A stretch of DNA of 63,937 bases, counting the filler, from Choristocarpus tenellus KU-1152 (lineage: Eukaryota; Protista; Phaeophyceae): the NCBI GenBank assembly GCA_964200185.2. It is 7 parts of 7 records of this genome, joined end to end, with 100 filler letters (N's around TTAATTAATTAA, not from the genome) between each part and the next. Parts side by side here need not be neighbours in the genome. Positions count along the whole stretch, not along the records: positions 13,748 to 40,858 come from CAXNAD020000152.1; 6 more parts are not named here. One strand, 5' to 3'. The notes below the pieces were generated by a model. It worked only from the letters and a program-made list of their open reading frames with translations. It did not search any database and had not been told where the DNA came from. Made by a program: the position numbers and the translations under genes. This document shows, in pieces, positions 29-30,899 of the stretch; position 1 is the stretch's first letter, and each line of letters starts with the position of its first letter.

Positions 29-212
29 GGCTCAAAGTATCTGGGGGGGAGGGGGGGGGGTCGACAACAGGGTGTCCATTCGGGTCCTGACCAGGAGAAG
101 TGCACTTACTTTATCCATCCGACGAATGCAACCAAATCACAAAAAAAAGGCGACAAGGAAAAATGGGCCCTGAGTGGATAGCCGCACACACACACCCCAG
201 ATACTTTGAGCC
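29..212 (+). mobile_element. MITE family A, copy 1 (~180 bp; TIR GGCTCAAAGTATCTGGGG; 3-bp TSD AGA)
   Basis: Begins ggctcaaagtatctgggg (29) and ends ccccagatactttgagcc (212). AGA flanks both sides. Homologous copies at 13549, 33183 and 35313. Confidence 0.85.
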
Positions 213-7575: not shown

Positions 7576-10481
7576 GAGCTATACAAGGATTTTTCCAAAG
7601 AGGCAATATGGGTGTATCCTGACGACCCTTCCAAGCGGGTAAGCAAGGAGTACTTCCTCCGATTGCTCAGAGAGGACAGGCCCAACATCCGGGTGAGGGT
7701 AGGAAGCGAGTTTATGAAATGTGACCTATATGTCACGTTAAAAGAGAAGCGGCACGGTGCGCCTGGTGTAAAACCCACGAACGACTCCACCGTCCTCGAG
7801 TCCATCGATAAGGAGCTGTCAGACCATCTAGAGGTAGGTGTTCAGCGTTAATTTTGCAACAAGGGTACTGTGACAACATGTCGCCGTAATTGCCCTCCGT
7901 TTTGAAGTAAATCTGTGTCCTTTTGCGAATGAAGACTCCCACGTAGGTGTTTATGGCAGCAGCAGTAGCCTCACTCACGGCAAAACTTATTGTTATTAGT
8001 TGCCCAAACACCTTGTACGATAGACTGCTTCCTGGTCGTGTACAACGGGCTGTGGGAGGGACAGGTCATGTAGTGGTCTTCCGGCCCGGTACGTGCGTAC
8101 TTCCTACCGTCCCAATAACCCTGTGTTTGTCTTGAACGCAGCAATAAAAAACATATCCCAGTACAAACATCTATTGTTACCCAGAATACATTTTGTTACT
8201 AACTAACCTGATACGTGTGAACAAGTGGCATTTTTTTTTTTTTAATCTGAGCAGATTTATTTGATTAATTCACGTGATGTTACTGTCCCCCATTCGCCAG
8301 ATTATCCAAGCGGATCGGCCGGTCATCGCCAACAGCACCAGCAGCGCCATGCGGGCCAAAGCCGATGGCAAACCTCTTGGCTTCGTGTTCATGTCCATAG
8401 ACGCCGCGAACCAGACAGCACACGCCCTCCCAGCACTTTACCCACCTACCCACGGCAGTGACAGGTAACCACACGCATGCATAGTCCATCCAACAAGAAC
8501 TTTGCAGCCGCACGCGGAACAGAATAGACGACCATGTTTTATTCTACGAAATAGTGCAAAGTCCCAAGAAATAATCGCCAAAACAAACGCACATAATTCC
8601 ACTAACTATTCCGTTCATCATGATGACCTTTCTTTAAAAGTTCCTTTCGTTCATGTCCCCCTTATCAGGGGCTACTCCGAGCACCAGAAGATCATGGCTG
8701 CACAATTCGAAGGCCAGTTCGCGGAGGTGTTCTCCACTCCTATCAATCTTGGAGGCGGTACGTATTGTGGGTCGTGTCAAACAATCATATGACCGATTAG
8801 ATGCTGGTTGCGCATGCACCACTTGATTTATCATCGCAGCGAGTGGACTTGCCGTAGGGTAAATCCGTAAGGACGAGTACATCCTTACACGATGTGCCTA
8901 CAGATGCCGCAGGCCTAGTGAACAGTCGATTAACTGATGATGCGCTGTGCTCCCCTGCCCTCCTACGCCTCAGCTTAGGGATAGGGCGAGAGGAGCGTAA
9001 GAGCTAATCAACGGGTGGGCGAGATGGCAGACTTGTACATCAGCCGTATGGGTGTATGTCCTCTACATTGCATAAACAAATTACATTAACCCTCTTCTTA
9101 GCTCCAAATAAACAATGCGTAAATGAGCAGAGTACTTTTTGCCAACAGTTGCTGAACATCACTGTTCGCGCAGGTTGTAACCTTGTCTGCACAGCCACCT
9201 ACATTGCCCTCACAAGGCTTATCGACAAGTACCACAACAATGTCGATCACGCGGGGAATTGCATCATCCAGCACGCGCATTGGCAGGTAAGAAGGTTTCA
9301 TCTTGACACGACCTACTCAACACATACTCGCTGAATACCAGTCACCAAGTAACTAACTGCACGATCTTTAGTTTTGGTTAGTGTGTTGCAACCAGTATGT
9401 ATGATGGCGGTGATGTAGAGATTGTGCTCTAGCAATACTGGAAACCTACCCTGTTCCTCCACGAAACGCGACGAAATGGGCTGACATATCGGCCTCACGC
9501 CTATCCCTCCCTCGCTCCCAACTCCCCAAACTGGCCAGGTCGACAACTGCGTCTCAGAGAACAAGAACAATTTCTTTCTCGGATACACAGGGCTGTTGGT
9601 TGCGGCGAGTGTCATTCGTGTGGTCGAGATACATTTTATGATGGTGGGGCACACGCACATCAAATCGATCAGATCTTCTCCAGGTAACTAGGCAGGATAT
9701 GCAAGTTCGATAGCCACATAGTGTTTTTCTACGGACAGATACTGCCTCGAGGCTTGCAGCTCACGCTTGTTGCGTCTCTGGAAGGTTTATGGTCGTACGC
9801 TGGAATTGATCGATTGGCTTTTGATTTCACCACAACAAAATTGAACGATAAGAGCAGCTGCCAAAACTGTTTCGTAACATACTCTCGAAACAAAACAATG
9901 AAAAAAAATGTACGCATCACCCATTTTTATATCTATACTTCCATATACATGCATCAGAGCAGGTGCCTGCATACATATCTTGCTTCTCCACTTCGCTTCT
10001 TTCGCCCCCGCCTCAAAATTAACTTCCTTGCATTTCACCTTCAGGTTCTCATGTGGAATAAAAGGCAAGAACATATTCACAAGAACACAGCTGGGTGAAG
10101 AGCTGCAGGCCTCTTACACGGAGGTTCCAGTATACTACAAGACCCTGCGGAGCGAGGGCAACTTCAAGGGACTCCTTCGCGGTCGTGTCAACCGTGTTCC
10201 CAATATCACGAGCTGCAGGGCTTTTCGCGTTGAAAAAGGCGGTGATGGGCGGGTGAAGGTTAGCGTAAAGCAATACATGCACAACACCGAATGTAGTGGG
10301 ATAGGCGGCGACCTTGCTATGGACCCCAACACCCCTCCGCTCGACCTCTTCATCGGCCACCCGCCTCGTATCCAAGATGCACCACCCTACCAGCTCAAGA
10401 GCGTTCCCAAAGACGTCATCCTGAAGGTGGAGCAGCGGTACCAGGCGTCGCACGAGCGCCTCCCTGCTGCGTACCCACTGG
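7576..10481 (+). pseudogene. Intron-containing Sola-like (DUF7869-type) DDD transposase, frameshifted and partial
   Basis: GT-AG exons 7576-7833, 8301-8464, 8669-8757, ~9174-9286, 9539-9683 and 10045-10481 splice to EFMKCDLY...FMSIDAANQ...WQVDNCVSENKNNFFLG...HFMMVGHTHI(K)IDQIFSRFS. This matches the IDxxxQ / DNCxxENKN / VGHTHxxIDQxFS motif series. A 1-nt deletion near 9662 shifts the frame. Confidence 0.75.
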
Positions 10482-10485
10482 GTAA

Positions 10486-10585
10486 NNNNNNNNNNNNNNN
10501 NNNNNNNNNNNNNNNNNNNNNNNNNNNNNTTAATTAATTAANNNNNNNNNNNNNNNNNNNNNNNNNNNNNNNNNNNNNNNNNNNN
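10486..10585. other. Artificial contig linker
   Basis: N44-TTAATTAATTAA-N44. Confidence 0.97.
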
Positions 10586-11432
10586 CCTGGTGTATTGACT
10601 GCCCCCCCCCCCCCTCCTATCATGCCTTTCTTGATATTATAAATATATATTATTATTGTAGAAACCCTGTCCAATGATGTCCGTAGCAAGATTATTTCTG
10701 CAAAAGAGAATTATTGCTAAGAGAGCAAAAAAAACCCATCCCCTTAAGATTTTGAAATAATCCTTGATGTGACCAGCTGTTTAAAAAGGGTAGTTAGGAA
10801 GTTATCAATATACCATGTTATTTAAATGATAACAATTGATTCTTGGGGCATTTTCCTGTGCTCGTAGGTCTTCACTGGTATTACTATCCATTTTTATTAT
10901 CAGGCATCCCAAAGGCATAGTATCATAGTTTGGTCACATCAATATAATCGTTATGGATGTCTTAATGCAAATAATTCAGGTTAGCATTACACTCACTAAT
11001 ACTGGGTATAATAAGGGTCAATATGTATTGGGAAGAAGTAATTTATTATTATTATTACACAGTGTCTTCACTGAAAATTACAAGAGCAGAATTTTATTTA
11101 CGTAAAGACTAAAAAAAACTACACATATAGCCATTGGGTGAATCACCTTTTTCTTGTGACAACAGCCCTAACTCTAACCTGTGCTGTGACATAGAACTCA
11201 ACCACAAAAAAATCATAAAACTGGATACAAGACACTAAGTTTAGGATTTGGTCAATCCACTATCCACACCAATTATCTAAAATAGAACACATGAAACCAT
11301 CCAATCCTTCATAGCTAAAATTTAAAGAGCAGCAACAGCAGAGGGTGCAAACACAGCAAATTAGAACAACAATAACAAAGCAACTGTCAAACAAATTTTT
11401 AAAACAACGCCCAAGATTGTGATCTTTCTCAC

Positions 11433-13767: not shown

Positions 13768-16118
13768 ATGGGGCTTTGGAGCGCCTGGGGGGGGGATGGG
13801 GGAGGGGGCGAGAACAGTAGCGGGGCTGTGCTGGTGTTCATGCCGGGGACAGCAGAGATCGATCGACTATGCAGAGAACTGGACTATGCAATGGCAATGG
13901 GTGTGGGGGATGCAGGAGATTATGATGACTTTGCAGGGAGGCGGGGTGGGGGAGGGAATGCTTCTCTTCTAGTCCTCCCGCTGCATGGGTCGCTCCCCCC
14001 ACAGAAGCAGCGTGCAGTGTTTGACCGGCCTCCTTATGGAATGCGAAAGGTGGTTGTGAGCACCAACATTGCGGAAACCAGTATCACGATCCCGGATGTT
14101 ACTGTTGTGGTTGATAGCTGTCGTGTCAAGGAGATGGGTTACGATATCGCGCGGCAGATGCCCCGACTGCAGGAGGCCTGGGCGAGCCAGGATTCGTTGA
14201 CCCAGAGGAAAGGGCGTGCAGGGCGTGTTAGGGAAGGCGTGTCGTTCAAGCTTATCCGAAGGAAGACCTTCTCGCGATTGCCTGCGCATGGCACTCCAGA
14301 GATCAGACGGGTTCCCCTGGACCACCTTGTGTTACAGATTAAGTCTCTGGGCTGCGAAGAGCACCCTTCAGTGGTGCTGGGCAGGGCTCTGGACCCGCCA
14401 GATCCTAAGGCTATTCAGGATGCGGTGGATACACTTACGGGTCTCAAGGCACTAGGAGAGAATGCGGTGAGGGGGTTGGTTGGGGTCAATGGGTCCTTAG
14501 GAGGTGCTATGGGAGGATTTGTCTTGGAGAGGCGGAGTGGGTGTTTTGTCTGAAGGACATGGAAAAAGTAGAAACCGTTATATAGGTCATTAAACAATAT
14601 GCCTGAATGCTGTAGTTGATCCACTGATGATGAGATTAAAGCCCCACAGGTAACCGCTTGTTGGCATGGACCTTACTGTAGGTAACAAGAGAGTAATAGG
14701 ATATCCCACACTTGGTATTTAGTGCTGCAATAGTAACAGAAATGTATAATGAGAACCAGACAATCAACCAGAGGTGCTTCCTGGACAAGTGATGTTTTTC
14801 CTGGCATCAACTGACAGTATTTACTGTTATGTTGTCCTAATGTTGTCCTAACCTCATTCTATTACCCCCCACTCTCCTTCTCTCCCTTAGCTGAAGAAAA
14901 GTTTTTGTAGCAGTTTCTTGTACTCCAGGAAAGAGTTATTGCCCTACTGAGGTCAATATTTGGATACCTTAGTCAAACGACAAGCTCACCACTGCAACCC
15001 TTGCCCACCCTGCCACTCCCTCCCCACATTACACCCCGTTCGTTTATCATGTTGCCCTCTCTGGCTCCCTTCAGGAGCTGAGCCCGCTGGGTTGGCATCT
15101 CGCAGCGCTGCCATGTCCTGTGCAAGTGGGCAAGATGCTCGTGTATGGGGCTGTCCTTGGCTGCCTTGACCCCGTCTTATCCATAGCCGCAGGGCTTAGC
15201 TGCAGGTCCCCCTTCCTATCCTCAGGAGACCCCGAGAAGCGTGAGGCCATAGATGCCGCAAAGAGACGAGTGGCGGCTGCGGGCGGGGGGCGCAGCGACC
15301 ACACCCTTTTGGCTGTGACTGTGTCAGAATGGGAAGCGGCCGGGGATGGTGGGGGCGGGGGCGGGGGAGGGCGGAATGGAAAGGGTAGAGGCGGGGGGGG
15401 AGAACGGGGACGTTCAGCTTACTGCCGTGAGAATGGACTGAGCTTTGAGCGCATGCGGGAACTCGGGGAGGTTCGTCAACAGCTGGCGCAGGCGTTGGCT
15501 GGCATTGGGTTTATCTCAAGCCCTCGGGCGGCATTTGACTCATCTGCGAACGTGAACGCGCAGGCACGGAGCTGGCGTGTGGTGAAGGCTGCAGTGTGTG
15601 CAGGGCTCTACCCCCGTGTGATACGTGTGCACCGGCCGATGGAGAAATTTGTGGATCTTGTTGGGGTCGGGGCTGTTGCTGCACGGCACACAGCCAAAGA
15701 GTTTCAATTCTTCACCAGGCCAGTGGATGGGGGGGGCGGTCCTGGAAAGGATGACCGTGTGTTTATCCACCCGTCATCAACAAACTTCACGACGAATGAC
15801 TGGTCCTGTCCGTGGCTGGTGTACCATGAGCGTGTCCACACGAGTCGTGTATTTGTCCGGGATTGCACTGAGGTGTCACCCTATGCCCTCCTGCTTTTTG
15901 GTGGTCAGGTGGCGGTGCAGGCAGGGCTTGGGCGCATCACTGTTGATGACTGGGTGAGATTTGAGGCCATTGGTCGTATTGCGGCACTGGTGAACAAGCT
16001 TCGTCAGCGGTTGGATAGTATGCTGTTGGAGAAGATTGGCGACCCAAGGCTGGATATCGCGGGGTCGAAACTGTCGATGGCCCTTGTTGAGCTCCTCCAG
16101 ACTGATGGCATGGGATAG
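13768..16118 (+). CDS. DEAH/RHA-box RNA helicase (DHX57/DHX36/DHX29 group), 3' half: helicase C, HA2 and OB-fold; 5'-truncated
   Basis: AVLVFMPG, PLHGSL, STNIAETSITIPDV (motif V), QRKGRAGR (motif VI), PEIRRVPL. Exon ends 14466 (gtgagg); next exon 15075-16118 reads ELSPLGWHLAALPCPVQVGKML...CAGLYP...VFIHPSS...SPYALLLFGG. Confidence 0.93.
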
Positions 16119-18298: not shown

Positions 18299-21200
18299 AT
18301 GGGAAGTGCGGTAGCAAAGGAGAAGCTGTGGGATGATGACCAAGACACGTCAGGACCTGACGACTGTCAAGACATTTCAGCCTTCGAGCACTCGTTTGCG
18401 GCGAATATAGAGGACTTCACTCCTGGCCTTCTGCCGTCTGTAGAACCAGCATCTGATTCTTCCAACCGTGCTTGCTCAGGTCGGGCAGTGACAGTTGAAA
18501 TGATGATGGAAAAGCTGGTGGTGCGAGAGGCCGTGCGGATGAAGGAAAACATCTTGTTGTCAGTGCCATACGAAGAGATCCACCAGTTGACTTGGGATCA
18601 TGCGCAATCCAGCCTGAAACTCCGTCATGGGGGACACTCGAGCGACAGTGTACCCGATTATACCTTCATATGCTTCCGAGTTGAGAACTCACTAGATCTA
18701 GAGCTGGAGCTTAAGCTACGTGCTAAGGCAGCGATCAAGAGGGGAAGGAAACTGGAAATCTCCTCATTCTATCTTGGCATATTCGCAGGTCCAACAAAGC
18801 CCAAGCCATTCCAACGCAAGCGGCCGAATCTCGCATTATCTGTACCCGAAGGAGAACTCCCATCACTGCTGGTATGGCTTGACTCTACCACCAGACCTAG
18901 AACTCGTGTTAGCGTTGTCATATGACCAGTCGCTTTCAGAATACCTGTAGGTATCTCGCCTTTCGACCTTCCAAGGGAATAATCCTAATACTTCAATAAC
19001 CTCATCAAACATGTAATTTCTTGCCCCGTTTCTAATCAAAGTGCTCCTGGTTCATGTTTTGGCTCACTCTGCTAGGATATGCGCCGTTGGGCACTAGAGG
19101 AGAACGCAGGTAGTGCGAGCCCAGTGCCATCTTGTTCGTCCCTCAGGCCAAAGCTTGCTCTAGGAATGATCTATCAGGGAGAGAATCGGTTCCCATTGTC
19201 AGTAGCAGACGGTGTCTATAATACGGGCAGCAGTAGCGACTCTGGACGTGGAGAGGGCGAGCTAGTGATGAATTTCTCTGCAATTAAGGTACAAATGACG
19301 GAGGGCGGTATACGCATCATTCCTTATGACGACATCAAGGACTGGGCGTTCCTTGACCTGGTGGGCACTAGGAGCTCTGCGGTGAGTGGCCTCAAAATCT
19401 GGATGGCTAATGGGAAGAACCTAGGCATAGATGTCAACAATGAGGAAGGGGGAGATGGGAACAACGGACTAAAGCAGAATCATATCTATCTTGGCATACC
19501 TGACGATTGGCTGCTACTTGCTCGCAACAGCATGGAGTTCTTCTGGAATCGGCATCGGGCAGACCAGTACTTGTTACCAAAAGCTGGGTCAATACTTGGG
19601 CGGCCTGTGGCTTCTGTCATCACGCTCACTGGGGAGGTGGTCTCCCCCAACCCACTGACGGGACTCCTTAATGCCATTGACCTTGATGGCTCACCTGTCC
19701 GGGTTGGGCAGGTGCTAAAGAGGTCAGGACACCTCCATCTCAGTCCTAGATCCTTGTTAGGTGTGGAAAAAAAGCAGCCTCTGAAATCAAATGCAACTGC
19801 CAAGTCAACGTGGGAACGGATTGTGTTGCACCAAGGATGGCTGCGTAAGCGTGGTGGTGGAGCCTTAAAGAGGTGGCTTTGGCGATACTTTGTAATCTTC
19901 AGTACGTGTCAGGGTCATTTCCTTGCCTACTATGCTGATGTGTGTGACATACCCCTATTCAGCACAATCCAGAAAGAACGTAGATTTGTGGACCTATGCC
20001 AAGTATGCTTCATACGACCCGAGACTAACCGAGAGTCAAGGGGCATACCCCCTCATGCATTCACCCTTGTGACCATGAAGCGGCAGTGGACCTTGAGTGC
20101 AGATTCTCAAGCAGGAGTACAGAAGTGGCTTATGATGCTCTCAAGGGCAGTTGATGAAGACGTGGCGGTCGTCACTGATGATGAAATGATATTCGAAGTA
20201 TTTTTGTATGTTGCAGTGGGGAGAGAAAAAACATACAGGTTTAAGGGATCTGCAACAGCACATATCGGGAGCAGAGGAATGAAGCTGGAACTCGAAGAAA
20301 AAGAACTAGGGGGAGGCTCTGGGTCGATCCGTGCACAACCCTGGGCAGGGGACACCTCTGAGATGCCACGTATTCATTTTTGGAGTTACACAGACTTCTT
20401 CAATTGGAGCGTTGTGAAACTTTCTGAGAGTGGTACAGGCTTGAGGATCAAGTGCTTCACCGATGCAACGTTCGAGAACAAACAGGTATGCTTGCGCAGC
20501 CCCCTTTACAACAATCTCTAGAGTGCGGTGACTCTGAACTCACACAGAAAACGAATACTACCTTTATGAATAAATTTTTCTAAACACCACTCTCTTGCAC
20601 ATTATACTTAGAATTTCACCAGCATGTGTCAGCTTCAACAAGCTGCGGTTTTGATTATCATGCGTAAGGTTTGCCCAAAGATTGGAGGAATTGACAAGAA
20701 ACCAACCAATGCTGCGTGCAGAGGAAAGTTGGTGGCAATCCTCCCAGTACATAAATGCAGTTGGATTTATGATATCTTGCTGGAGGATGGTAGATGCCAG
20801 ACATTTCAATACTGAATCCCGTCGAAACTGGCAGGGTGCTGATCATTTTCCCATGTGAGCTTTTTCCTGCTGTAGAACAAAGTATGAAAGACCCGAAGCA
20901 TTTAAGAGGGTAGGAGTTTTACGCTGTTAATCCGCTTGGGGCTTGACTTCCCGCGGGTTTTTTATGCCCTTTTTCGGTTTTCTGTGTGAACACACTTGCC
21001 TAAAGTGTATACATGACTATGAAAGGTGTGTCCGGAGCAAGGATATTGATACTTGCTAACAAATATCATAAATCGCAACATTGGATTTATGATCCTGAAC
21101 GAACGCGGCCCTGCCGTCTTAAATGCTTTGACTCAAAATGAAATTAATTCATATGTGTTGTTTAAGCAAAATACAGAATAAATGTAGACTCTGAATGTAT

Positions 21201-24200
21201 ATTGGAGCAAATAAAATATTTTGTTAGAGAAACTGCTATTGTAGCAATCCAAGTGTCCATGCCAGAGGTACATGCTGGCGGTAAGAATCTGAGACTTCCT
21301 AGCAAACAATCACAGAAAGGGATGAGAAAGCCTGCAGCACACAACAAGAGAGCATGTATCTACATGTAATGTACTATGTGGAGTACTTCAAAGTGTGCCC
21401 AATAACTTTCGTGCTCAATAGTAGTTCGAAGTATATTCTGAGTTTAAATGTCTGCTTCATGAGTCACATTGGAGAGAGCCACTTGTTGAGGAGCCTAGAC
21501 TAGAGGGTGTATACTGTGGAGAATGCGCAGAGAGTTCTTCATGGGTTGAACAAATACAAAGAAATATTACAAGAATGTTGTTTCAGCTACAATGTACAGC
21601 ATATTTACCTGTTCTTTTCCCCACCCACATATCCTTAACCTCATGCACCCCTGTCTGCCCCGCTGCTTTAGGATATGACACTGGTGACATCACAGGCCTC
21701 ACAATTGGCAATTGCGATTGAGCACCACATCGAGAAGTTCATGGCATTCATGCACCTCCGGCTTGAGACCTCACAGGGCATGGCGACTGCTCATGAAAAG
21801 TATCGACTAGAAAAAATATATACTGGACAGGAGACTGCAGTAGATGAGAAAACGTGCCTGCAGGGTCAACCACAAAGAAACATGAAAAACATTAGCACTG
21901 AGAAGGGGGAGGGGGGCAAGAAGGCAGATGGAGACACCAATGGGTTTGGCAAAAAGATGGCGGAGGGGTCAGAGATGATGAAGTGGGTTGAAGATCCTTG
22001 TGACACAGATCTGAAGGAGGTCACGGCAGCCTTGGCCCTACACAATCCATTCCAAGTAGTGGTGGGGCCTTCTGTAAAGGACAATGCATTGGATGGGTAT
22101 GGAGCACCTAAGCTCACCCTTACAGGTGGAGGGACGACTGGCGAGAGAATCAATCCGTTTGACCAATCTGACAGCAGTGAAGACGACGGCAATTGTGGGG
22201 AATTGAAGAGCAGGACCATTGGAGTATGGGAAGACATGGATTCTCACAGCTACCTTTCTGCAGGTGACATCACAACATTCTTCCCAGACGATGTGCCAGC
22301 TGACACTGAAAATACAGACACCCATCATCCCTTTAGCACCCCTGGTGCTCCTGCCCTGAGGACAGGACCACCACTTCCGACCAAGCCAGTGCCGCCGGCA
22401 GTAAACTTTGAATTATTGTTAATGATGGACGGACTTGACCAAGAGAGTCCCAAGGATCCAGGGAAGAAGGAGGCACTTTTCTTTGAGACAGTGAAGGATA
22501 TTTTGCCGGGAGGCTGTAGTACTACTCCCTCAACACCAGAGCCTTCTCCCATTGTACCCCAAGCCTTGCCCTTCAGTGGTGGGGTGGGGGAGATTGTTGG
22601 ACAATCGTTCCCAACGATAGTGGGAGCACCATCACAATCCAAGCCCCTGCCGCAATTGGCTGCAACGATGGGGCCTCCAAGCTGTCAGGTGTGGGAATTG
22701 AGCCCACCAGACTTTGCTAGGACATGTCCTGGTGCAGCAGGACAGTCCACATCGGACTTCTGTCCTTTTGCCGACCCAGATACAATGGGTATGCCTGGTG
22801 GGGACTTGAATCCTGGAGAGGGGCTAGGAATGAAGGTAATCATTATGAGTAAGTGACTGGAGCCATCTAAGAGGGGGTAATATTTTGGTCCTTGTGAGTA
22901 ATACGGTATTTTTTAACCCCATATAATATACACCATGCCCATGCCTCATATGCAGTTAGTCTCTGTTAGGATGGTGTTGTTGTAGAAGAGATTATAAGTG
23001 GACACACTTTTTGCTGAATGCTTCCTCCATAGTGCTCGAAGCAGATGCATCACCGGGGCAGTTATAGGGGTCCTTGAAACTCAGCAAACCCCCCTTCTTA
23101 GGTGGTCCCACTCAGGGCATCGTAGAAAGAAGCTAGAAATACTACTGGTATTGTTTTTATACTATAGTGTACAGCGCTTCTCTAGTACTCTACATCGTAA
23201 ACGTTTTTACACATTTGGAGTACCCTTACAAAAAATTGTTTGAATTAGATCGTTCAAAGTTGCTGCTCATGACGGGGCAGGTTGAACTGTGCGCACTACA
23301 AGAAATCAAAATCTAATGGGAGCGTTCATGGAGTACTACTCCAGAATTTTCCTGAAGGCCAGCAGTTCCTGCAGGCTGATATTATAAGAATCCCTCTTCA
23401 TGGTTTGGTCCCTAATTTCCACAATAATTATCGTTTGCCTTCAAACCCCAACTCCCAACCTTGAACAAGAAGTGACAAGCACACCCACCCACTTGTTTGT
23501 CTCTTCGTTCGCATCACACAGGTCATTTACTCCAGCCCAGACTTAAAGGTGACTGTTGAAAACTCAAAGAAGGAAAGCGATGGCCGCTACATGCTTACCC
23601 TCCTCTATGAGCGTCCACCGTCAGCACTGTCCACGGCCAACTTGACCACCTCTCTCCATGGAGAGTGTGTTTCGACCCTCAAGGCTTCTTTCCAGCCCAA
23701 GGTTATCTCAGCAAGGCTGGGGCCGAACACGGACCCTGTTCGTCACACTTTGTCACTCCGCTGCATCCGCCCTTTTTGCCACCCCCCCCAACTCTCCTTG
23801 CTGCTCCGCTCACCCCCACCCCCTCCCCCCCGTATCTCGTTTTCCCAACAACTCGACTCTTCCCCCCAAGACCTGAGGGTCGACATCCCGCTTGTCGGGA
23901 TCACCATGTCTTCCTTCGTCCAGGCCATTCCTGAGACAGCTGACTCATTCCGTCGAAAGTGGTCTGGACTCTCTGCCCCTGCGCAATCTGCACAAACCAC
24001 AGTATTAGTTGCAAATGATCTTTTTCCAGGGAATACTTTCCGTTCCTTGGCACACAACATGGGATTGGCAGAGGTGTCTGGGGTTGGAGAAGACACTCTG
24101 CTGCGAGCAGAAGGGTCACAGAGGGCTAAGCTTGTGGCAGCAGCGGGCTGCCTGCACACAGCCACCCGGTCAGTGTCTGGGGAGGAGGTGACCGTGGATT

Positions 24201-24379
24201 GTCTTGTTGGGGTGGAAGTGAGTCATGCCACCTTCACTCTCCCAGCAGCCTCCACCCCAACTACTGAGGGAAGTGGAGTGCCTGTAAGAGTAACAGTTAA
24301 GAGTGTTAACCACACCTTTGCAGACTGTTTGCTGCAGGAGATCGTGGCAGGGTTGCGGGCAGGGAAGGATAATCAATAG
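18299..24379 (+). CDS. Multi-PH-fold protein with NPF linker and C-terminal alpha-adaptin-like appendage (ear); ~1334 aa, 4 exons
   Basis: Exons 18299-18871, 19076-20485, 21672-22835 and 23522-24379 join in phase 0 via GT-AG introns. Canonical PH: VLHQGWLRKRGGGALKRWLWRYFVI...FTLVTMKRQWTLSADSQAGVQKWLMML. Last exon SSFVQAIPETADSFRRKWSGLS...AAAGCLHTA...DCLVGVEV...VRVTVKS resembles the AP-2 alpha platform subdomain. Confidence 0.8.
20890..21134 (+). mobile_element. MITE family B, diverged copy in intron 2 of the PH-ear gene
   Basis: gacccgaagcatttaagagggtag...ggatattgatacttgctaac...cttaaatgctttgactc. Flanks GAAA/AAAA. Confidence 0.8.
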
Positions 24380-27300: not shown

Positions 27301-27729
27301 TCAACCCTTAGGCCGCTTACACCGACCTCAGGACCTTACAGGCAGGATAGGACATATGAGTCAACACACCCAGTGATACCACTCACTGCACCAGCAGAGT
27401 AGTAGCATTTCAAGTGTAGGCTAGGTTCTTTGCGGTGGACTCAGGATAACATAGCAGTCATACAACACCCCACTTCTACAGTAAGTCACCTCAACGGATG
27501 TAGGGACATTATGTTTGGATTTAGAATCACTAGTACATCTTCTGCCCAACATCACGCAGACGTCTTGCAATCTCTCATAGGCAAAAGAGCCTGTTGTCTG
27601 AGAGAGGCAGTTGATCGGACAGCTACTACAAAGGTTGATAGAGTTGAAACACAACTTGCCCCCAGCTTCCCTTGCCATGTTGTCATGTTTGTTCAGAGTA
27701 CGGTGGAGCTCAGGTGGTGCCCAGATCCT

Positions 27730-28509
27730 TCAGCACTCTCCAGACCTCAGCCTTTCCAAGCAGCTTAAGCATCCCTGGTGAGCAAAAGGAATATATGATA
27801 GGGAGTACCACACCATGGACACAAACTGCACCACCACTAGAATGAAAAGCACAATTCCCTGGAATGGAAAAGATTTGGTGCACGCCACAGCTATTGTCAT
27901 GACCAGAGTGGAGAGGTAAATAACAGTTGCAGCAATGCGTGTCGGGGCAAACATCTTCTTTATCTGTGCCCACGGGCCTGAAAGGAAGAAGGAACTGCAG
28001 ATGCTTACTACATTTCCGGCAGAGTAGAAGACTACAAAGGGCTCAGGGTTTCCCATTAGCAGCTTGACGATCCTGAGAAAGCATGGGATTGGCGAGCAAG
28101 AGTAGTCAGATCAGGCAGGGGGCGAGGGGTAGACCATGAATTTGGCACTGTCATGGATGTGTGTATGTTACATCATCAATCACACATTTTGCTTGATTGA
28201 CCATGTGGAAGGGAGCAGGGGGTCTTATGGTAGTGAATGATAAACAGAATAAGCCAGGTTGGTGTGTGCAAGGACCCTAAGGTCAAAGAATGCGATTTTG
28301 TTCGTGGAGGGGAGTGGGGAAGAGAGCACTCACCGGAAAGTAGAGCCGAATGTGAGGAGGAAACCGATGGTGAGACAGAAGCCGAAGCCCGCGATTCGCT
28401 GTTTCAGTGTCATTGAAGGGCAGACGCCGCAAACAGCCTCTTCCATTTCCTGCATTGCAGTCTTCTCTTCTGGTTCTTGCCCCAGCAGACGCCGAGAGCT
28501 TTCCTTCAT
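27730..28509 (-). CDS. SFT2: Vesicle transport protein SFT2 (Got1/Sft2 family)
   Basis: Exon 28509-28334 MKESSRRLLG...CPSMTLKQRIAGFGFCLTIGFLLTFGSTF plus exon 28072-27730 IVKLLMGNPEPFVVFYSAGNVVSICSSFFLSGPWAQIKKMFAPTRIAAT...WYSLSYIPFA. A small upstream exon is possible. Confidence 0.93.
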
Positions 28510-30899
28510 TGACTTTGTGAGACAAAGAGAAGTGAGAAGGGGCCAACAGGGCGAAGCTAGTCAAGATAGAAGGCATCACCATCCTATTGGCATTGCTCTC
28601 GCTCCGAGAACGAGGCAACTTTACACATAGTTTCGGTATCATTTTCTAGAAAGGATGAAATCGTGATAGGTGAAGACAAAACCGTTACGACACATTGTCG
28701 TTGCGGGTATATGTAATGAACAAGCGACTAAATCAACAACGTAACATGTTGTATGCTTGTCATATCCTTGTGGAAACTCACATCAAGTCAATGCACCATG
28801 ATCAGAGGTGACAGGGCGGTTGGTTGTGATCAATCTCTACATTGGCTATTTTTCGTCCACCAATATACAAGTAGCAAGAAGGGAAGAATTACCGACCTTG
28901 TTCAACACATCATTGCAAACACAACAGAAATGCTGACCATGACTAACAGACACCGACGAGTACAATAAAGTACGAAAATCGGCGATAACAACCACCGTCG
29001 AACTTAAAGGTGAGAAAAACAAGCACCTACTGGGCACAACGTAGTTAGAATGTCGTCAAAAGGCGAGATCAGAGACGTGGTTCGCAAATCACGGTACAGT
29101 AAGTAGTATCACCACCCGTCCTCACCTCAAACCATTCGCCTGACATCGACATTGCGTCTTCCACTCGAATCCACAGTCTTCTTACAGATTAGGAAACATA
29201 AAATGTAGTATCCCTCGCACACCTAGAGAACAGGGAACAACGGTGGAGTTGTAAATTGAAAGTGATATCTGCTTGGAACGAAAGGGTTTGTTTACACCTT
29301 GGAAAGCGTTTGCACGAGTGTTAAGAGGTGTAAGTGGATTGGTATTGTAGTGGAAAAAAGTTGGAAGGAGGATGTTCCCTGCATGAATTCCACAGGTTTG
29401 AACCCACATCAACCCCAGACTTCTTTCTGTAGGCATTTGGTTTCGACTATCCAATTCCGCGTACCAAGCAACGGAATGTACTACTGTGCCTAGCCCGTTC
29501 TATCCTATGTGTTGGTATGGAACAAGAATGCTGGACCAGAATCGAGGTACGAACGTGGATTGTTTGAGGGTGCTCGGGTACAAGAATCGAGGGAGGAGGT
29601 AAACTGGTAAGTGATGCGAGATTAATGAACTCAATTTGCGAGAAGCAGGGCATGAACGGAGGCAGTACAGTTAGTCATAGTGTAACAGTCAGTATAAGGA
29701 GTCGTGTAAAAGTGTGCCCTTGGCTCTGACCACGACTCAGGATAGTTGCCAGGCTAAAGATCAAGACAACAAGGCCGCGGACCACTCGCGGCATACGTGA
29801 AAATATGAAGGAGAGAGGCGAGGGTTGGAGAATGAAGGTGTGGGGGAGAGACTCAGTCAATCATAGTAGTGGCTTTAGAGTTCACTGGTACGCATCGATT
29901 GATCGCACATAAATTCGATGTATGCGATACAATGGTGGTCAAAACATTTTGTGAATATTGTTATGGAGCAAGAAGCAACATATGCCATACGTGTTAGGTC
30001 AAAGACAGCACAATAATGAGATGGAACCCACAATACCACGGGCAACAAGATATCCAAAACACTGCAGTATGATTTCCTTTGAAGGTAGATATGTGGCACT
30101 TCTTCATGTGTGCTCACTTCATTCACAAACAAATCGTCGATATGTATAGCCTCGACCTGTGGTGTAGAGCTAAGCTATATTGGAGGCATAGCAGCAGTGT
30201 ACACATTGTAATTACGAGCTTTGATGGGGCAGTGTAGTATACCTAGTAGTCAAATAGTGATAGATTGTGGAGAGATATCTTTTGCATTTACAAGCGTTAC
30301 TTTTACAGAGGTCCTTATGATATTGAATTGACTTTTCCCCTGACACATCTACAAAATGTTAAAGGGCATAATAATATAGGAGTATATGTTGCAGAGTAGT
30401 ACAACGACAGAATATTATTCTAACCCACACAACAAAACTTCACTGTCAAGTTTGGGTTTGATGGTATTGACCCCTGTATTTAAGTACACTCTTGTTTGCA
30501 GGGCCAGCTGCACACATACGTGAGGGATGGCGTTCTGCCAAACTGTTGATATTTGGAGGGGAGTGTGCAAAATAGGACAATAGTAAGGTGTACCCTGTTT
30601 AGTGTATGTGAGATTATGACATTTGATTGATTCATGTGATACGACTAATCAGATAGTACATCTGGATTATGTATGGGGATTATTTATGGGTTTGGTTCTG
30701 CATTTAACTACTCCGACATAACCAATGACTTATGTATGAAGCACAAAAAATGATAAAACAAGTAATAAGAAGACACCACACAAGGTCACTCTTCTTTTCA
30801 ACCATCTCATCATGTTCACCAATAATGGGGAATTGTGCGAGGCTCCACACCTTCTTTCCTTTGCTACTGATCAAATAGCAATACCTTCCGAGCTTAATT

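Follow-up and report, generated by a model that had tools for sequence, protein, structure and literature searches.

Clathrin coats have their interaction hubs in the adaptin ears, which, to our knowledge, are regarded as parts of heterotetrameric complexes, the gamma-type ears of the GGAs aside. Can an ear of the AP-2 alpha type be used outside such a complex, on a protein of its own? The question is raised by a locus of Choristocarpus tenellus KU-1152 (Phaeophyceae); the endocytic machinery of the brown algae and their relatives is, as far as we know, almost unstudied. The window analysed here is a stretch of 63,937 nucleotides made of seven pieces of assembly GCA_964200185.2 joined end to end with filler, and the locus is found in the piece taken from CAXNAD020000152.1 (contig C152). 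From the sequence alone, an initial annotation had read four open reading frames (ORFs) of this locus as one protein with PH folds, an NPF-containing linker and an alpha-adaptin ear. The present analysis points to the same architecture, a PH membrane module followed by an NPF linker and an alpha-type ear, with no trunk, very probably carried on one polypeptide. From what is known of these domains, its most likely function, to which we assign a probability of roughly 60%, is that of an endocytic scaffold or monomeric adaptor anchored to the membrane. All similarity searches and fold predictions were run exon by exon, on separate exon sequences, and genome-wide searches covered an assembly of 164 Mb in 27,310 contigs.

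The ear and the missing trunk

The window's own exon 4 gave no match to Pfam, and in a single-sequence phmmer search against the PDB it reached an alpha ear only at an E-value (E) of 1.7, matches becoming significant with the family profile only; a word search with the exon gave nothing in the length range that it covered. This family was assembled by a HMMER scan of 1.8 billion representatives, which returned nine relatives, all of them short exon-like ORFs; together with the window ear they form an alignment of 10 sequences (A1). With the A1 profile, seven distinct PDB sequences were matched (E 3.7e-11 to 1.2e-9), and every one of them is an AP-2 alpha appendage. Of the ten members, nine matched Alpha_adaptin_C (PF02296) at E ≤ 1, the best at 2.9e-6, and only two matched the beta2 platform model, at E 0.16. 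In a language-model atlas, all ten neighbours of the ear were adaptin-ear clusters (0.93). Foldseek comparison of the AlphaFold model also ranked alpha ears first: these made up the top eight matches (E 1.3e-10 to 1.9e-9), with template modelling (TM) scores of 0.52–0.66 over about 280 columns. They were followed by the gamma and beta appendages of COPI and the beta2 ear, and at lower scores by the appendage folds of BBSome and Fanconi core subunits. By profile and by predicted fold, exon 4 encodes a bilobal appendage, specifically of the alpha type. The C-terminal two-part alpha-adaptin ear proposed in the initial annotation was therefore upheld, and the platform pattern that had been noted as parallel to AP-2 alpha runs residue for residue in the HMMER alignments.

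Residues of the ear, numbered from the start of exon 4, were mapped from these alignments onto AP-2 alpha, whose chain 1b9k begins at residue 701. F143, R144 and W147 correspond to F836, F837 and W840 respectively, the stretch C227-L-V-G230-V-E232 corresponds to C902-L-L-R905-L-E907, and R256 and K260 correspond to R916 and R920. Neither W147 nor F143 varies across the 10-member family. In AP-2 alpha, the platform site for DPF/DPW and FxDxF motifs is centred on W840 (PMC5694535). In the region of the sandwich-side WxxF site, residues 36–68 of the ear are modelled with a predicted local distance difference test score (pLDDT) below 50.

The Pfam scan of the four exons found PH as the sole domain, with no match to the Adaptin_N trunk (PF01602). 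This trunk is about 600 amino acids (aa) long, and a trunk hidden in the introns is ruled out because these (204, 1186 and 686 nt) are too short. Adaptin_N exons do occur in the same genome, all on contigs other than C152, and the claim that the protein has no adaptin trunk holds. Since the trunk is missing, the protein would not be expected to join an AP-2 tetramer. Scans of the organism's own genome with PF02296 or the A1 profile returned no paralogous ear beyond the gene itself. A motif scan followed by a Pfam check recovered a canonical alpha-ear platform exon, ...AQDFFERWEML..., on contig C20625 (L001 1483–1608, + strand; PF02296, E 4e-4). Judged by these sequences, the organism possesses a normal AP-2 alpha ear as well, its coding sequence divided among small exons, and the PH-ear gene of the window encodes an extra, diverged alpha-type ear that is distinct from it.

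A genome with two such ears could use the second one as a decoy or regulator, in which the tethered ear, by competing with that of AP-2 alpha for accessory proteins, would restrain or time endocytosis rather than promote it. The identity of the pocket Trp with that of AP-2 alpha and the presence of a canonical alpha-ear exon on another contig both favour such competition. However, no sequence feature separates a decoy from a scaffold, and membrane anchoring and NPF motifs fit a positive recruiter at least equally well, which leaves the decoy a very improbable explanation.

One gene or two

The reading of the ear as part of a scaffold or adaptor requires that the four ORFs belong to one gene. 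They can be joined through three phase-0 GT-AG introns into a single open frame (191 + 470 + 388 + 285 = 1334 codons; Table 1), and the coordinates, phases and open frame of the initial annotation all check out. Relatives were found for exon 1 at E 1e-30 to 1e-41, for exon 2 at E 1e-64 to 3e-171 (22 relatives with 40–61% identity) and for the ear exon at E 2e-6 to 6e-14. With conserved relatives for every exon, the features of this gene lie far beyond chance expectation.

The junctions were compared with those of the relatives (^ marks the junction in the motifs below). Intron 1 lies at the identical position in the deposited model P0001 of the brown alga Discosporangium mesarthrocarpum (...PPLK^DMRRWALEE), and in an alignment of 12 relatives the ORF of every relative continues just beyond ...LPSL[KQL]^GT, where exon 1 ends. 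At the intron 2 donor, the ORFs of all relatives read straight into the GT codon after an invariant CFTD..F..[KR][EQ], and a conserved LVT.QA..LAIAIEH starts right behind the acceptor. Intron 2 also cuts the third beta-rich segment of exon 2, whose C-terminal helix is missing from exon 2 and comes from the first part of exon 3; exons 2 and 3 therefore belong together. At the intron 3 acceptor, the ear ORFs of the relatives have the sequence Q^V[IVL][HSY], so that an AG stands immediately ahead of the first residue found in the window. Two other sites were tried as the intron 3 donor and rejected, the consensus GTAAGT at 22849, 13 nt downstream of the proposed donor, and GTATGC at 22789; being in phase 1, neither can be paired with any AG that precedes the ear.

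Next, four loci were compared: the window, the Discosporangium locus (L004, CAXNAE020000206.1) and two metagenomic or ENA contigs (L012 and L014). Hidden Markov models of the three families (exon 1, exon 2 and ear) showed all three to be collinear and on the same strand in the window, in L004 and in L012, and exon 2 and the ear to be so in L014. Each of the four loci has Got1 downstream, on the opposite strand, and the pair of PH-ear gene and Got1 is syntenic across the four genomes.

These comparisons bear on whether the locus instead holds two genes, a myristoylated multi-PH protein encoded by exons 1–3 and a separate small alpha-ear-like protein encoded by exon 4. The link from exon 3 to exon 4 at junction 22835/23522 rests on synteny, adjacency and frame logic. 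The weakest part of the single-gene model is the donor of this junction, GTAATC, a weak site that was placed by frame compatibility, with the out-of-phase consensus GTAAGT a short distance downstream. The deposited Discosporangium annotation also breaks up the locus, leaving the ear uncalled and not joined to exons 1–3. Two separate genes are, however, difficult to reconcile with the order, strand and tight spacing conserved across the four genomes. In Discosporangium the linker and ear ORFs are in one frame with one stop between them, and in L014 they overlap, leaving no space for a terminator plus promoter. Furthermore, the first strand of the ear begins directly at the conserved AG, the ear ORF of the window has no ATG ahead of that strand, and the linker frame of the window is open as far as the intron 3 donor. 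On this comparative evidence two genes seem highly unlikely, and it is very probable that exons 1–4 form a single gene.

The Discosporangium annotation (L004 5567–10647) truncates the orthologue. P0001 is partial, with a conserved strand lost to a predicted intron, and its omission of the invariant CFTD..F segment at intron 2 looks like an annotation error; a 245-aa gene is annotated within the linker, and the ear ORF (9856–10647) is left uncalled. In L012 and L014, the conserved helix LA(I/L)(A/V)IEH^...EKFMA.MHLRLE is interrupted by an extra intron that is absent from the window and Discosporangium, indicating intron gain or loss within the family. A second, incomplete copy of exon 1 was found at L016 (C7217:1883–5062) on the − strand (ORF 1306–1728 and the antisense of 2495–2746). 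This copy, which also covers exon-2 aa ~56–117, shares roughly 70% of its residues with the window when judged by eye. The family-invariant Tyr and Trp of IPYDDIKDW are His and Arg in it, and it diverges after about 60 aa; by its sequence it is probably a pseudogene fragment.

Table 1. Coordinates, in the window, of the PH-ear gene, its parts and its neighbours.
Feature	Position	Strand	Remarks
Whole gene	18299–24379	+	four exons, three introns, 1334 codons, internal stops 0
Exon 1	18299–18871	+	ORF, 191 aa
Candidate PH/PTB-like segment	exon-1 aa ~60–150	+	language-model neighbours are PTB/PID clusters
Basic motif KPKPFQRKRPNL	18797–18832 (aa 167–178)	+	end of exon 1; nearly invariant in the 12-relative alignment
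Intron 1	18872–19075	+	204 nt, GTATGG...CTAG, phase 0
Exon 2	19076–20485	+	ORF, 470 aa; core of membrane-binding module
PH-like domain	19151–19570 (exon-2 aa 26–165)	+	seven strands, long C-terminal helix
Strongly conserved segment	19571–19810 (exon-2 aa 166–245)	+	many invariant residues, low model confidence
Canonical PH domain	19811–20164 (exon-2 aa 246–363)	+	Pfam PF00169; basic beta1-beta2 region GWLRKRGGGALKRWLWRYF
Third beta-rich segment, candidate PH-like	20186–20485 (exon-2 aa 371–470)	+	six predicted strands (aa 371–461), pLDDT ~70
Intron 2	20486–21671	+	1186 nt, GTATGC...TTAG, phase 0
Exon 3	21672–22835	+	ORF, 388 aa; conserved helix, then linker
Conserved helix	21693–21770 (exon-3 aa 8–33)	+	conserved across relatives
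Linker	rest of exon 3, ~350 aa	+	acidic, Pro/Ser/Gly/Thr-rich
NPF motifs (HNPFQ, INPFD)	22044–22052, 22152–22160	+	in the linker
Intron 3	22836–23521	+	686 nt, GTAATC...ACAG, phase 0; acceptor conserved, donor inferred
Exon 4 (ear)	23522–24379	+	ORF, 285 aa, then stop codon
Ear first lobe, beta-sandwich subdomain	23522–23896 (exon-4 aa 1 to ~125)	+	
Ear second lobe, platform subdomain and stop	23897–24379 (exon-4 aa ~126–285)	+	
FRRKW	23948–23962	+	platform; W147 at 23960–23962 is W840 of AP-2 alpha
DEAH-box RNA helicase gene, 3′ part	13768–16118	+	Helicase_C, HA2 ratchet, OB_NTP_bind; cut by piece edge
Got1 homologue	~27713–28515	−	at least two exons, downstream of PH-ear gene

The helicase gene ends about 2.2 kb upstream of the Met-Gly start of the PH-ear gene.

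The membrane module and the linker

The N-terminus of exon 1, MGSAVAK, fits the N-myristoylation pattern G-{EDRKHPFYW}-x(2)-[STAGCN]-{P}. In the alignment of 12 relatives (A2), M1 is invariant and G2 is present in 11, so the annotated Met-Gly start is both real in the window and conserved; the pattern itself is met by eight of the 11 relatives that start in this way. N-myristoylation of G2 is probable. The basic motif KPKPFQRKRPNL is among the most conserved stretches of the protein and was matched to no fold or motif. The language-model features of exon 1 were nearest to PTB/PID clusters (0.83), which is a lead only. A comparison of the exon-1 and exon-2 family profiles by hhalign gave no similarity (Prob 0.1), and an origin of the PH-like segments as internal repeats is therefore unsupported.

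Exon 2 contains the canonical PH domain with a basic beta1-beta2 loop (GWLRKRGGGALKRW) that had been annotated. It scored 36 bits with PF00169, over the gathering cut-off of 25.1, and has the PH fold. The basic residues K258, K265, R266 and R270 of the beta1-beta2 region are invariant (alignment A3), and the K-Xn-(K/R)-X-R signature is only partly kept. Among solved sequences the domain is closest to TAPP1, cytohesin-2/3 and Akt, whose PH domains carry PDB annotations for 3-phosphoinositide binding. The domain has a basic pocket of the phosphoinositide type and may bind such lipids. The exon-2 model aligned with the dual-PH protein centaurin alpha-1 over 375–388 columns; a shape search of the ESM Atlas with the same model returned generic PH proteins only (TM < 0.35). 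Between the two PH domains, aa 166–245 contain many invariant residues, Gly, Arg and Pro among them (S172, G175, R176 ... N239; A3). Despite this conservation, the segment has an AlphaFold2 pLDDT of 26–39 and was matched to no fold. In the third beta-rich segment FWS.TDF..W and CF....F are invariant and the strand pattern fits a PH domain, the list of fold matches being taken up by the canonical one. Of the up to four PH folds first proposed, two are established, and the exon-1 and third beta-rich segments remain candidates.

The linker is probably disordered. Its P + S + G + T content is 38%, and it has 51 acidic and 27 basic residues. Both NPF motifs that had been described in this Pro/acidic linker are present, and all four orthologous linkers contain NPF, in one to three copies and mostly with Asp, Ser or Glu directly after it. 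No conserved clathrin box, DPF or WxxF motif was found in the four. EH-domain exons are spread over seven or more contigs of this genome; potential partners for the NPF motifs therefore exist.

Proposed function and comparison with known systems

The key steps of the proposed scaffold or adaptor are as follows. The N-terminal module, with a probable myristate, at least two PH folds and two candidate PH-like segments, would use its lipid anchor and PH modules to hold the protein at a phosphoinositide-defined membrane. The ear would gather accessory proteins via their short aromatic motifs, while the NPF motifs would bring in EH-domain proteins. The protein would act in this way alongside canonical AP-2, which is also encoded in the genome. 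As for the GGA-analogous coat adaptor of the initial annotation, its anatomy is supported, and nothing that had been named beforehand as refuting it was encountered; its adaptor role, EH and phosphoinositide binding and myristoylation we infer.

In addition to the uncertain third junction, several observations weigh against this function or against the domain assignments on which it depends. The window ear is too diverged for Pfam, its homology being shown via the family profile, and its AlphaFold model is of moderate quality (pLDDT 62, predicted TM score 0.59). The exon-2 model is poor overall (AlphaFold2 pLDDT 55), and no likeness of exon 1 to the remaining PH-like parts could be detected. 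The four orthologous linkers have no conserved clathrin box. Lastly, the equivalent of R905 in the ear is Gly, which is invariant in the family, and the equivalent of F837 is Arg. If R905 and F837 serve as ligand contacts in the alpha ear, the pocket has been kept with a ligand specificity that may differ from that of AP-2.

The last two of these points would equally suit an ear that has been re-used outside clathrin/AP-2-type endocytosis, for instance as a docking domain with ligands of its own that acts at a different stage of trafficking, at contact sites or in signalling on phosphoinositide-marked membranes. A further point in favour of re-use is the rate of change. Among named relatives, the one nearest to exon 2 is a partial Discosporangium protein with 58.7% identity, and the ear is 37.5% identical to the Discosporangium ear; on these two identities, the ear is evolving much faster than the PH module. 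Appendage folds are also known in COPI and, at the lower scores mentioned above, in the BBSome and Fanconi core. On the other hand, the family profile selects AP-2 alpha ears exclusively, the pocket Trp and its flanking Phe are invariant, and the same protein has conserved NPF motifs, which are typical ligands for endocytic EH domains. Re-use of the ear in a different process is accordingly considered doubtful, and an endocytic scaffold or adaptor is preferred.

No paper on a protein with PH domains and an alpha ear was found in the literature, the coverage of which was incomplete, so that this is weak evidence of absence; to that extent, the statement that the architecture was not recognised from characterised proteins agrees with our search. 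Since Pfam finds Alpha_adaptin_C in nine of ten relatives, the architecture is probably present in databases already, wherever complete gene models exist, and "not recognised" means uncharacterised rather than undetectable. A tentative history, which we regard as possible, is that brown algae and their relatives have a lineage-specific single-chain endocytic adaptor, in which a duplicated AP-2 alpha appendage was moved onto a myristoylated multi-PH anchor with an NPF linker. If true, this would be the first alpha-type ear to act outside an AP complex, and the ear "hub" would be redeployable as an independent module, like the gamma ear in GGAs. As judged from comparative gene structure, it would be a clear-cut example of ear redeployment, from a lineage that has received little study. 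The locus also flags an annotation problem, as the deposited Discosporangium model cuts the gene short and leaves out the ear.

Compared with known systems, the PH domain is most similar to 3-phosphoinositide PH domains such as those of centaurin alpha-1/ADAP1, TAPP1 and cytohesin/GRP1; the ArfGAP and Sec7 domains of tandem-PH proteins are absent. The monomeric endocytic adaptors of PTB/PH type (Dab2, ARH, Numb) and the scaffolds of the EH network likewise have a lipid or cargo module of the PH superfold followed by a disordered NPF region. The likeness is one of layout; these proteins carry ligands of the AP-2 ears (DPF, FxDxF, [DE]nFxx[FL]xxxR), whereas the protein described here carries the ear. 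The AP-2 alpha ear (PDB 1b9k, 1w80, 1ky6) has the same bilobal arrangement of sandwich and platform. However, it has R905 and F837 in place of Gly and Arg, it lacks the divergence that puts the window copy beyond Pfam, and it sits on an Adaptin_N trunk and hinge, whereas the ear here sits on PH domains and an NPF linker. Identity as an alpha-adaptin was rejected, there being no Adaptin_N trunk. Membership of the GGA family was rejected as well, since Pfam found VHS or GAT in no exon and the ear is of the two-lobed alpha type. Two further differences are that the protein here has no conserved clathrin box and that its predicted membrane binding is via PH domains and myristate, compared with Arf-GTP in GGAs. 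The resemblance to GGAs is one of logic: in both, an N-terminal membrane or cargo module, a flexible linker and a detached C-terminal adaptin-type ear are combined in a single polypeptide. Next to the GGAs, an alpha ear on a PH anchor would give a second and independent example of an ear made into a monomeric adaptor.

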